In this document: positions 42,700 to 48,512 of the stretch, in pieces | How positions within the stretch are numbered: the first letter of the stretch is position 1 | How the letters are laid out: each line of letters begins with the position of its first letter | From: Vitrella brassicaformis CCMP3155 | Taxonomy: Eukaryota; Protista; Chromerida | Assembly (NCBI GenBank): GCA_001179505.1 | Contig: CDMY01000332.1 | Coordinates: 52,553 to 116,552, forward strand | DNA length: 64,000 nt | Reading direction: 5' to 3' | Position numbers and translations under genes: made by a program | The notes under the pieces: generated by a model | Seen by the model: only the letters and a program-made list of their open reading frames with translations | The model's database searches: none | What the model was told of the DNA's origin: nothing

Positions 42700-45600
42700 C
42701 GCCGTCATCGTGTTCCTGTGATGAGATGGCTTTTGTGGCTGCTGGCGCGGCTGGCTCGCCGCTGCTTGTCTTCAGGTCAGCATGGCCCTCCCCGTCCCCA
42801 TCAAGTGGAGGCCGCTCATCCTGAGAAACAAACGCACACAGATGTTTGTCCATGAGGATATGTGCTGTATGTCTGTATGTCTGTGTTACTTACGGGCGGT
42901 GGTGGGACCCATGGAGGCGTGACGGTCCTGCACAAGAGAGCTGCAGCCACGACAAAGGGCAATCCATGCAATGTGTGTCTAAGTGTCGTTAATGTCGGTG
43001 CTTTGGCTGCCTTCGTAGATACCGTCCCAGTCGAAATGTTTGAAGAATGGGTGTTCCTTGACTTCTTCCCCGCCGTGACTCGAGCTGCCCAGACGCTCCT
43101 GAGGGTTCCGTTCCAACAGGCTGCATTGCATGAGACACCACAAGCACACTGAGAATGCCATTGTGTCTCCGTGCTGTGGGTGTCGTGTCCTTCACTCCCC
43201 CCCCTCCAGCCACCCCACCCAGTGATCAGGGCAGCCGCATCTTTGTCGACGTAGGGAGGGATGTGCAGCGGGCCCTGCACACATCAATCAATCCATGCAC
43301 TCTCCCAGTCAGTCCGGCCCATATTGGATGAGTGGGCACCCACCCACCTCCAGTATGTCCTTGTAGAGCTCCATCTGGTCTCCTGTCTTGTTCTCCTGCC
43401 CGAAGGGGAGAGGTCCCACGACGAACTCGCAGAGGCACACGCCCACCGACCACCAGTCCACGGCACTCGTGTAGCCACGATTCAAGATCACCTCGGGCGC
43501 GATGTACTCGGGCGTCCCCACCAGTGTGTACGCCCGGTGCTGCTGCTTGCAGCAACCGAAATCTGTTTTACACATGGGACAGGGGGAAGATGAAACACAG
43601 AGTCGTGTGTGGTGTGGTCGATTGAGCGGTTAATGGATGTACCGACAAGTTTGCAGTATCCTTGCTCGTCGAGGAGCAGGTTTTCTGGCTTGAGGTTCCT
43701 GTAGATGATACCCAGTTGATGCAGGTAGTCGATTCCCAATGTCTGCACGTGTCACCGACACACATACATGGATGTCAGGTAGAACGATCACATGTGTGCC
43801 TGCAAGTGACTCACGATGGCTCCGATGTAGAACTGAGCCTGCGGCTTGGTCAAGATGCCTACACACACACACACACACACACCCCAAGCGCCCACTGACT
43901 GTAGCGGATTCTCTCTCTGTTTGCACTTTCGCTTGCCAATTTGTCTGATGGCGTAAAACAGGTCGCCGCCGCCCAGATACTCCTGCAAAAAGTATACGTG
44001 CGAGTCGTCCTTGAAGGACTTGATGAACTGCACGAGACACGGGTGGTAGCACTGCAGCAGCATCTGCCGTTCCGTGAGTACGGCCCGCTGCTGCTTTCGC
44101 CGCGCCACTGCCTCTTTGTCGATGCACTTGAGGGCGTACTGCTGGCCGGACACTCGGTGACGCACCAGCTTGACCACACCGACCGCGCCCTTGCCTGCAG
44201 TGTCGCGATTGGTGCATGTCTGTCTGTATGTATTCTCGTGAGTGAGTGAGTGAGTGAGGCGACGCACGTACCCGCCTGCTTGAGCACCTCCAGGTCATCC
44301 AACTCGATGTTCAAGTCCTGCATACAGCATTATATTATGACTCATCAAGTAGCGCTGGGCGGCTGTCTGTCGGTGCTGTCTGTCTGTCTGTCAGGCGTAT
44401 GTGCATACTTGGAGTCTCATCCTGTGCTCGAGTGTGTTTCGGAAGGCGCCCACGACCTCCTTGAAGACAGCAGACTCCAACGTGAGACACTGACAGACCC
44501 AACAAGTCAATCAATCAATAACTTCGGCAGGCAGGCGGCTGGGCTGCCTCGCATACATACCGTGGTGTGTCCTCCGGCGATGCACCGTGCTGATCTCTTC
44601 TCAGACAGCAGCAGCGCCCTCTCGCCGAAGTAGTCCCACTTGCCCAAGGTCCTGAGGACCTGGCCGTCTCGCTCGACGCGGATCGTGCCACTCTGTATAA
44701 GATAGAAGAGGTTGGCCTCTTCGCCCTGCTCGACCACAATGTCCCCATTCTATGACACAGACAGACAGACAGAGACACGGCCCACAGCACATTCAGCTGT
44801 ATGTACACATGCCCCCCTCACTACGTACGCCGTAAGTCCGTTGGCTGAGTGATGCCACGATGCTCTGCACCTGCTGCTCCTTCAGTGTCTTGAACAGCCA
44901 TATCTGACGAAGCACTGTCCAGATCTGTCATGGCACACAGACATCAGACACAGACAGACAGAGTGGGTGGACAGCCCCCCCCCCCCCCNNNNNNNNNNNN
45001 NNNNNNNNNNNNNNNNNNNNNNNNNNNNNNNNNNNNNNNNNNNNNNNNNNNNNNNNNNNNNNNNNNNNNNNNNNNNNNNNNNNNNNNNNNNNNNNNNNNN
45101 NNNNNNNNNNNNNNNNNNNNNNNNNNNNNNNNNNNNNNNNNNNNNNNNNNNNNNNNNNNNNNNNNNNNNNNNNNNNNNNNNNNNNNNNNNNNNNNNNNNN
45201 NNNNNNNNNNNNNNNNNNNNNNNNNNNNNNNNNNNNNNNNNNNNNNNNNNNNNNNNNNNNNNNNNNNNNNNNNNNNNNNNNNNNNNNNCCCCCCCCCCCC
45301 CCCCCGCTTGCCCACCTCGTTGGCCCTAATTGTGTCTGCGAGCGACATAACAGCTCCGCTCCTCACCGCCAGCTTCCTGAGCGACAAATGAGATGCATGT
45401 ACCCTTCTGTGTCTGTCTCGCCTCCTGCGTCACGCACTCGACAATTTGTTTGTATGCGAGTCTGCTGATCCGGCAGGGCGTGCGAGCAACCACCCAGTGA
45501 GGCATCCGCTGCATCCCGTCGAAGTACTCCACGCCATACACCCGACCCTCCGTCAGATACCGCTCACCGGCCCCGCCAGCCTTCCCAATCTCACCAGGTA

Positions 45601-48512
45601 TCCCATCACCATTAAACTCGATACACGAGTACTGCCGTCGTCTGTGTGCAGCCTTGTCGTCGTCGAGGGCCTCCATCATCGTGTTTGTGCCCACGACACT
45701 CTCTGACCTGTGGCGATCCATCGTTGCGGGACTGTCGAAGTCAGCCGTGCCTTTCTTCAGGATTGGTCGTGGCGGCCCGCCGACAGATGAGGGTGAGGGG
45801 CTGTCCTTGAGGATGGGTCTGACGCGAGAGGGGGAGGCTGTCTCTGAGTCCACATGGTGTGGTGACTCGGGGGCTGCTGGCACGTGGAGCGATTGAAGAG
45901 GGTTGATGGGAGGGGAGGTGGGCGTGGGGTCGTCGGCTGATAGGCGGGACAGGCCGCGGGTGTATGCAGCGGTCATGCCTTCGGACATCTCGAATGACGC
46001 CAAACCTGAAGATAATAGACAGACAGACAGACAGAGGAATCGGCATGGCTTTGGTTAACGGAAGGCTTGTGCAAAGGTGTGTGCGTACGTTGATGCTCCT
46101 TTGGGCAAGTGATGGCTTCCACCTCGCCAGCCAGCACGAGCAGGAGCTGTGACGTACTGCCGGGCGAGACGATGACGTCTCCCGTGTTGACGTGGCACTC
46201 CTCCAGCTGGTCCACACACACGTCCTGCTGCTCGGGCGTCAGCTGACGGAAGAAACTGCACTGCTCCAGTAGAGTCTAGACATACAGACGACGACAAATA
46301 CTGTCTGTAAGAGACATGAGATGTATAGGATTCACGTGCGGGACCTTGCCATTCAGCCTTGAGAGGACTTGTGTCACGTTGGCAAGAAGCTGATACAAAC
46401 AGAGGAAAGAGGAGCCGTGTGCGGACCTAAATGTCTCGTCCTGATATATACCCTTTGGAAGGTTGCTCGCCCGATGGACAGGCATTGGACGTGCTCAAGG
46501 GCTGCAGACGTGCACAGTCATACAATCAGCTCTGCAGGTTCTCTGCAGTCAGCCAATCATAGTTCACCAGTGGCGGTGACTCGGTGCCGCGTTCCATTCA
46601 GAAAGGCAAAGGAGCCGACCAAGTCACCTGCAGCACATGAATTCAACGCACCCAGGCCTGTGTGTGTGCGTATGGTATGCACAAGTTTGCACATGTACCT
46701 GTTTTGAGTGTGTTGACTCTGTTGTGCAGTTTGTCTGTGAGCATGACCTTGCCAGACATGATGATGAACATCCACTGAGACATCTCACCCACACGCACCA
46801 ACACCTCCTGCACACCAACACACACACACATCCATCGATCGACAGACGAACCCCCACACACGTGCATACTTTCTTCTGGAAGTCTTGTGCGATGCAGATG
46901 GATGCCAGGTGGCGCTGGTCGGTGGCTGACAAACGGCTGAAGGGAGGGGTCGACTCAATGAACTCTGCACACGCAATGGCGAGACAGTCTCCACAGCGGC
47001 CGTCAGCACATGTGCTAACTTACGAAGGGATGCATCAATTTTCTTGCTGTGTACGAGCCGCATCGACCGCCGAAAGGACTAAACAGAACACGGACCTGTG
47101 TGTTGGTTTGGGGTAGGTGTTGCTTGTGTACGTCTGCTCACCCTTCCAGACATCATCCAAACGCTTCCTGGAGCGACACACGACACTGTAGCTGTTCTGA
47201 AAAGTGAAGACACACATACGAATGCGCCAGGGCAATGCAATCAGAAGCTGCCTGTCGTATGTTTGATTCGTATGTTGTGTTGACCTCTTGCAGCTGTATA
47301 GGAGCGCCAACTCGCCAAACGACTGCCCCCTCTGCAAATCCTTCAAATACTTGCCGTCGATGCTCACGCTGAACAACCCTGACTGTATGTATGTTCGCAG
47401 GAGTGAACACGCGGCACGCACTGGGCGCCTCTTTGGCAGCCTATGTACCTGGATGAAATAGCAGCCGCCCACTTCCTGTTCGGCCCCCTGTGTGAAGACC
47501 ACATCGCCCTTCTCATATTGCAGCCTCTGCATGCTGTCGATGATCAGGTCGTGGTCGGCGCTACCCAAGCCGCTGAACAGAAAATGGCCTCGCAGTGTCT
47601 GATACACCCACACACACACACACACACTCATATATTATATATGAAAGATATGGAAGCGCTGATTCAGACACAGATAAATCTGTGTCTCTCTCAGCCCGCC
47701 AGTTTAACGACCTTTTTGAGGAACCTCCTTTCCTCCATGGAGATGTCGGAGTTAGCGGGCTCCTGGTGCTCGACTGAAGCAGCGAGACAGAGCAGGAGTG
47801 GCTGGATACACACGCACACACATGAGACCTATCTGCCTACTTTCAGCCAGGCTCTTCCTCGACACGGCTTGTCCCCTGATAGCAGATCTGTGGAGCCAAC
47901 AATATGCAGACGACGAGGACCATTCTCTCTCTTTCACGCGTGAAAGTGTGTGTGTCTCGCGCGCTTACTTCCTCTTGTCCTTTTTGGTCCGCATGTGGCT
48001 TGGCAGAGTCGGGAAAGTGTCGACAAGCCACACACAAAGAGACAAAGAGACAGACAAGCAGACAGGCAGACAGGCATGATCAGGGAGACGCAAGCAATAA
48101 GTCATCATCATCGTGTGTGTTTGTGTGTGCGTCACAGGTCGTCGGGTCCCCTTGGCGAGGCCGAGTCGTCGCTCATGACCTCACTACGGAGGTCAGGACG
48201 AGCCGACCTGGAAGATACAGATACAGACACAGACACAGACAAAGACAACACACAGAGCCGGTAGCATATCCACTGTGTTGTGTGTCTTGTGTACACTGTC
48301 ATCTTGGTCTTGAAGTTGTTGCCGCCGTCATTCGATGAGCCGTCCTGCAGAGAAATCACAACACAAGCATCAGCATGAGTGGCAGACTGCGGGGCCGGAC
48401 ACACTCCACATGATCTCAGTTGTTCGACTCTCTACCATGCAGTGAAGTGGGCCTGCCTTTGTCTTACGTGTGTGAGCAGCTCGACGCGTTCCATGCTCTG
48501 TCGGCAACCCAT
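42700..48512 (-). CDS. PKG: cGMP-dependent protein kinase-like protein with 4 cNMP domains and a predicted inactive kinase domain; 3' end may extend to about 42304
   Basis: Start MGCRQS. c[19 protein letters not shown], c[19 protein letters not shown], linker RLQ|D. Kinase motifs [45 protein letters not shown] tail [17 protein letters not shown]. Confidence 0.92.
44989..45288. other. Assembly gap (300 N) flanked by poly-C tracts, inside a PKG intron
   Basis: Run of N with C homopolymers on both sides. Confidence 1.

Follow-up and report, generated by a model that had tools for sequence, protein, structure and literature searches.

The gene described here raises the question of whether a cGMP-dependent protein kinase (PKG) with asparagine in place of its catalytic aspartate is a pseudokinase shaped by selection, or an enzyme that has only recently been crippled. 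The gene lies in intron-rich, eukaryotic DNA of Vitrella brassicaformis CCMP3155, on the minus strand of a 64,000-nucleotide stretch of contig CDMY01000332.1 (hereafter the window; all positions are window positions and all features of the gene are on the minus strand). In apicomplexan parasites PKG acts as the central effector of cGMP in motility and egress; Vitrella belongs to the free-living organisms most closely related to them. A first-pass annotation, made from the sequence alone, had proposed that the protein evolved into a cGMP-gated scaffold or cGMP sink. The comparisons reported below do not support that proposal. They favour, with some confidence, a recent and lineage-specific substitution that would have crippled a previously active kinase, and that is incidental or at least unproven as selected.

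The whole coding span, 42541..48512, consists of a 31-exon chain that translates exactly to CEM02671.1 (A0A0G4EVK5; P0265), a protein of 1079 residues that carries the database name cGMP-dependent protein kinase, Vitrella brassicaformis CCMP3155, in its 90% identity cluster. When the 85-residue exon encoding the kinase N-lobe was used as a query, it returned a 1022-residue protein (P0002) at 100% identity, encoded on a 3520-nt contig (L002) of JGI sample 3300017148. As the P0002 coding sequence has no introns there, L002 must be a transcript. It covers 42092..47996, comprising 28 exons and the 3′ untranslated region (UTR), and shows no mismatch to the spliced genomic sequence 47996..42092 over its 3520 nt. 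As had been claimed, the codon at 43695..43697, which encodes residue 867 at the position of the catalytic base, reads AAC in the genome, and this public transcript agrees; the catalytic loop accordingly reads YRNLKPEN.

The catalytic-loop aspartate is held to be essential in AGC kinases, and its replacement by asparagine is the standard kinase-dead change. Four of the five catalytic residues are present in the window protein (the β3 lysine, the αC glutamate, the catalytic-loop asparagine and the DFG aspartate), the fifth, the catalytic-loop aspartate, being replaced by Asn867. The motifs that the annotation listed as kept were all found (K773, E792, DFG at 885–887 and APE), and N872 and the activation-loop threonine T897 are also present. 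A kinase is classed as a pseudokinase by sequence, following Manning et al., when at least one of the VAIK lysine, the HRD aspartate and the DFG aspartate is missing (PMC4718504). With Asn867 at the HRD position, the prediction of a pseudokinase therefore stands as far as that sequence definition reaches.

The age of the asparagine is most clearly shown by a 5346-bp genomic contig (L001) from the ENA metagenome assembly ERZ893784. Its collinearity with the window runs from 44927 past the 3′ end of the gene and on into the neighbouring one. Over 1399 nt of exon there are 45 mismatches to the window (∼97% identity), compared with roughly 80% identity in non-coding DNA. In the catalytic-loop exon, however, L001 differs at one base only, having GAC where the window has AAC, so that its loop reads YRDLKPEN. 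Because this syntenic orthologue from a closely related environmental genome keeps the aspartate, Asn867 appears to be both recent and specific to one lineage. The codon comparison thus has three sources: the genome, the transcript L002 and the contig L001. Across wider distances column 867 is aspartate in 63 of 63 aligned homologues, none of which has YRN. Among all the fetched proteins that match the catalytic-loop pattern, 211 of 213 have aspartate, and the two with asparagine are both versions of the product of this gene.

We then considered the remainder of the kinase domain. Of the columns with at least 95% conservation, L001 covers 113, and the window protein deviates at six of these. 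Five of these deviations are shared with L001 (Phe to Val in the Gly-rich loop, Thr810Ser, Thr821Gln, Glu856Asp and Gly912Asn); Asp867Asn alone is not. Five amino acids in total differ between the window and L001 across the domain, where the synonymous divergence (dS) is 0.12 and the ratio of non-synonymous to synonymous divergence (dN/dS) is 0.07; all dN/dS values for the pair lie within 0.07–0.13. The window lineage has one further derived change of its own at a conserved kinase position, Tyr929Cys in helix αF (VCLCEF; codon 43429..43431), where L001 has tyrosine and outgroups have histidine or tyrosine. Had the domain evolved free of constraint along the entire window branch, some 35 amino-acid changes should have accumulated (593 non-synonymous sites multiplied by half of dS), and at most four are seen. 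Either the change to asparagine is recent, falling roughly within the last fifth (or an even smaller part) of the window branch, or selection still acts on the domain, and these data do not separate the two. On the sequences compared, catalytic loss is not conserved among orthologues in the way that marks an established pseudokinase family, and there is as yet no sign of a conserved, selected asparagine state.

L001 is unlikely to be a duplicate of the gene from one and the same genome, since its collinearity extends into the neighbouring gene; the 90% identity cluster, besides the ENA fragment, consists of one NCBI and one JGI member. Other close relatives were sought in three ways. An exact-pattern scan of JGI metagenome contigs, in which the variable base was written as R, gave no match, the transcript itself also going unmatched. 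A protein-guided scan of the same contigs gave no relative, and the L001 exon open reading frame, used as a query, returned only L001 itself. L001 differs from the window in one further respect. Between the 3′ UTR of the PKG gene and the next gene it has ∼1.6 kb (L001 positions 2779–4383) that is missing at window positions 42071–42097. This stretch has minus-strand open reading frames with a match to Pfam Bles03 (PF08939), and the difference is a case of gene presence/absence or relocation.

The proposed mechanism depends on what is left of the protein besides the catalytic base. The fold is fixed by an end-to-end alignment with the chains of the solved full-length P. vivax and P. falciparum enzymes (PvPKG and PfPKG; E 1e-156), which places four tandem cyclic-nucleotide-binding (CNB) domains N-terminal to an AGC kinase domain. 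Pfam assigns Pkinase to residues 745–1001 and finds three cNMP_binding stretches. The annotation had read the phosphate-binding cassettes of CNB-A and CNB-D as intact and those of CNB-B and CNB-C as degenerate, with a Ser/Pro-rich insert, and alignment to homologues agrees on each point. The CNB-A cassette (47184..47319) is split by an intron and is intact in the alignment to PvPKG and 13 homologues. The CNB-D cassette (44582..44629) is likewise intact, and the arginine of its FGER motif is the arginine of the capping triad. The other two members of the triad are Gln735 and Asp736 of RLQD (44315..44411, with an intron between them), which align to the QD of IKMQD in PvPKG. In PfPKG the triad consists of R484, Q532 and D533 (PMC4412288), and since the window residues align to the P. 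vivax equivalents of these, the suggested match to the Plasmodium capping triad holds. The CNB-B cassette (46572..46619) lacks both the Gly-Glu and the Pro-Arg-Ser/Thr elements, a degeneration common to the aligned dinoflagellate and Perkinsus members of the same clade. In Plasmodium PKG, CNB-A, CNB-B and CNB-D bind cGMP and CNB-C does not (PMC6628679).

The description of the gene as a PKG paralogue proved correct, as a separate PKG with the YRD motif is encoded in the same genome. This canonical enzyme, PKG1 (CEM38956.1; A0A0G4H595; P0267), has 927 residues, lies on another genomic contig and is encoded by a transcript (L003) from the same JGI sample as L002. It starts with MGGC and has three intact cassettes, GRGTFG, YRDLKPEN and WDKDF. 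In a maximum-likelihood tree of 49 sequences, PKG1 falls at the base of the apicomplexan PKGs, whereas the window protein groups with the dinoflagellate and Perkinsus PKGs (split support 100/100). When the window protein is constrained to join the apicomplexan-type clade, the log-likelihood falls by 85.6 units (approximately unbiased test, p 2.4e-6, for a group that received its name only once the tree was known). A second tree, rooted on a ciliate, gives a type-1 clade (98%) of Apicomplexa, Vitrella PKG1, both Chromera PKGs and Amoebophrya, and a type-2 clade (100%) of the window protein, Perkinsus and core dinoflagellates. The type-1 signature motifs are ENDHPFI and IDFGCAKK; those of type-2 are QCYHPC and VDFGCCK, and the window protein has the latter two together with a degenerate CNB-B. 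Because the dinoflagellate lineage and Vitrella are each represented in both clades, the PKG duplication most likely predates the split between apicomplexans and dinoflagellates, as judged from limited sampling. No type-2 member was found among the apicomplexan sequences sampled or the two Chromera PKGs retrieved. Literature searches, which missed most subscription-journal papers, returned no description of this protein or of the two-clade split, and no experimental study of the dinoflagellate or Perkinsus type-2 PKGs.

Within type-2, the closest relatives of the window protein are the dinoflagellate PKGs (e.g. Symbiodinium ‘Pkg21D’), with 53–59% identity over CNB-D and the kinase domain, and those of Perkinsus, with 49–52%; the clade has 100% support. 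Like the window protein, they have a degenerate CNB-B, intact CNB-A and CNB-D, QCYHPC and VDFGCCK, and many of them start with MGC. In contrast, all those aligned or checked for motifs have YRDLKPEN, G-x-G-[TS]-F-G and a threonine gatekeeper, and they have no long insert in CNB-C. The apicomplexan type-1 PKGs (PfPKG and PvPKG; PDB 5DYK, 4RZ7/5DZC) are alike from end to end in having four CNB domains and an AGC kinase domain. The window protein also shares with the Plasmodium enzymes a degenerate CNB-C (PMC6628679), the capping triad and a C-terminal W-D-x-D-F motif. The type-1 enzymes nevertheless form a separate clade, with 41–46% identity to the window protein over CNB-D and the kinase domain, and the window protein differs from them in that its CNB-B is degenerate too and in its ∼140-residue CNB-C insert, glutamine gatekeeper, GKGAVG loop and Asn867.

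Taken together, the comparisons suggest the following mechanism. The type-2 PKG is an expressed, correctly spliced protein of an old lineage, in which only CNB-A and CNB-D are predicted to bind cGMP. If the protein behaves like Plasmodium PKG, cGMP would free the kinase domain on binding, chiefly to CNB-D, which has the Arg/Gln/Asp cap. Judging from known mutants of the Asp166 type, Asn867 should then cut phosphotransfer by orders of magnitude, and the intact lysine, glutamate, asparagine and DFG residues and the intact cassettes suggest that ATP and cGMP are both still bound. The Asn867 allele may be tolerated because the canonical PKG1 is present and could cover the catalytic needs. The protein of this strain is thus probably a cGMP- and ATP-binding, possibly membrane-anchored molecule in which catalysis is crippled, and most likely a newly crippled kinase rather than an old, specialised pseudokinase.

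Several points weigh against an incidental loss. The aspartate is seen in one close relative only, and that is an environmental contig, while the genome and the transcriptome may share one culture lineage. One of only five differences in the kinase domain hits the most critical residue, which could mean selection. The gene is, moreover, intact and yields a spliced transcript, which a functional scaffold would also be expected to do.

These points lead to the first alternative, that Asn867 was selected and that the protein, a pseudokinase soon after its birth, acts as a membrane-anchored, cGMP-gated scaffold or as a cGMP buffer without phosphorylation. We regard this as unlikely, although there is a good deal in its favour. 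The ATP-binding and structural residues of the kinase domain, CNB-A, CNB-D and the capping triad have all been kept, and the gene is expressed and spliced. The type-2 lineage of Vitrella was already odd before the change, with its GKGAVG loop, glutamine gatekeeper and long branch; the change falls exactly on the catalytic base; and PKG1 is available for catalysis. However, the nearest orthologue has aspartate and asparagine occurs in none of the 63 homologues, mere recency would leave the other parts of the domain just as well conserved, and the asparagine has been seen in one culture lineage only. In its boldest form, which we also think unlikely, this reading would have an ancient type-2 PKG, retained in Vitrella, dinoflagellates and perkinsids and not found in apicomplexans, now serve as a cGMP-gated scaffold or buffer beside PKG1, having just lost its catalytic base in one Vitrella lineage while cGMP sensing, ATP binding and the membrane anchor were kept.

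A second alternative, which we consider improbable, is that the Asn867 enzyme is still a weak or atypical kinase and that the function of the gene is essentially unchanged. Asp-to-Asn is generally known as the standard kinase-dead change in AGC kinases, there is no compensating aspartate nearby, and a single base separates the catalytic-loop exon from that of L001. On the other side, every other catalytic residue is canonical, and HER3 and the JAK2 JH2 domain, with asparagine in place of Asp166, still bind nucleotide (PMC4718504). What HER3 and the JAK JH2 domains have in common with the window protein is an asparagine in place of the HRD aspartate alongside retained nucleotide-binding residues (PMC4718504). 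In those proteins, however, the asparagine is described as a standing feature of an established pseudokinase domain with a reshaped nucleotide-binding site (PMC4718504), whereas the nearest orthologue of the window protein does not have it and the remaining residues of the site are fully canonical.

The weakest alternative, an error of base calling or assembly or a decaying pseudogene, could appeal to an assembly gap within the gene and to the dependence of the claim on a single base, but it is very improbable given that the A is also present in a transcript assembled independently, which matches over 3520 nt without a mismatch, that the gap is intronic and that the frame is open across 31 exons with a dN/dS of 0.07–0.13.

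In the sequenced reference strain the allele of the type-2 PKG is likely to be kinase-dead, and a wild relative does not have it. This allele is relevant to kinome comparisons that use the reference proteome and to Vitrella as a model for cGMP signalling. More broadly, two PKG lineages appear to have been present already in the common ancestor of Vitrella, the apicomplexans and the dinoflagellates, and Vitrella keeps both; the second would have two working cGMP sites only and, in Vitrella, a naturally bulky gatekeeper. Should the asparagine form prove to be under selection, it would be a rare opportunity to examine a pseudokinase just after catalysis was lost.

Two other features of the kinase domain predate the change at residue 867. 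The Gly-rich loop (44178..44272, split by an intron) reads GKGAVG, as annotated, and has the same sequence in the L001 orthologue (P0001). The severity attached to this departure was overstated, as the three glycines of GxGxxG are kept and the loop differs only in having Ala for Thr/Ser and Val for Phe. The gatekeeper is Gln821 (43983..43985), where 63 of 63 aligned homologues from both clades have threonine; glutamine is also present in L001. By alignment Gln821 corresponds to T618 of PfPKG, and the natural residue is thus the same as that of the engineered T618Q change. The PfPKG T618Q enzyme is reported to keep its activity and to lose sensitivity to compound 2 (PMC4412288).

At the other end of the protein, the public model starts with a predicted MGCRQS (48495..48512), in which Gly2, Cys3 and Ser6 form a motif of the dual-acylation type. 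Among 109 homologues that start with Met, 61 begin MG and 37 begin MGC; an N-terminus of the MG(x)C type is also found in coccidian-type sequences (Hammondia, Eimeria) and in Vitrella PKG1. The 5′ end of the transcript L002 is at 47996, within exon 4 of the public model, so that exons 1–3 come from that model alone. The transcript open reading frame starts MRTKKDKRK, and we rejected this as a start conflicting with MGCRQS because L002 is 5′-truncated in exon 4.

The degenerate CNB-C contains the Ser/Pro-rich insert (∼140 residues; 45569..45994), which is transcribed and which, among the 14 sequences compared, is found only in Vitrella. The stretch of CNB-C that bears it has 155 residues in Vitrella compared with 8–52 in the 13 homologues. 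No Pfam match was found for the insert.

The 3′ end of the gene had been placed at 42700, which is wrong. The real end is at 42541, the last exon (42541..42588) having been overlooked. This exon, defined by the transcript and by homologue alignment, encodes ...DGSPEAALLNWDRDF followed by the stop codon (...NWDRDF and stop), and so provides the C-terminal W-D-x-D-F motif typical of PKGs.

All 30 introns have an AG acceptor; 29 are GT-AG and one (43859..43936) is GC-AG, its GC donor also being present in L001. The assembly gap (N at 44989–45288) lies in the intron 44925..45315, with poly-G on both sides (17 G before the N run and 14 G after it). As the transcript joins 45316 straight onto 44924, in frame, the gap is intronic. 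An alternative splice built by hand around the gap was rejected, the transcript having an extra 61-nt exon (45376–45316) and other junctions. The other introns are of 59–137 nt, and the true length of this one is probably about 90 nt rather than 391, the 300-N placeholder hiding little beyond the homopolymer. The independent metagenome contig L001 also ends, at its position 1, just past the same poly-G run, and the homopolymer probably breaks assemblies. Between 42600 and 48300 the introns often end with microsatellites of the (CA)n, (GT)n or CTGT type, for example around 43870–43900 and 42640–42690.

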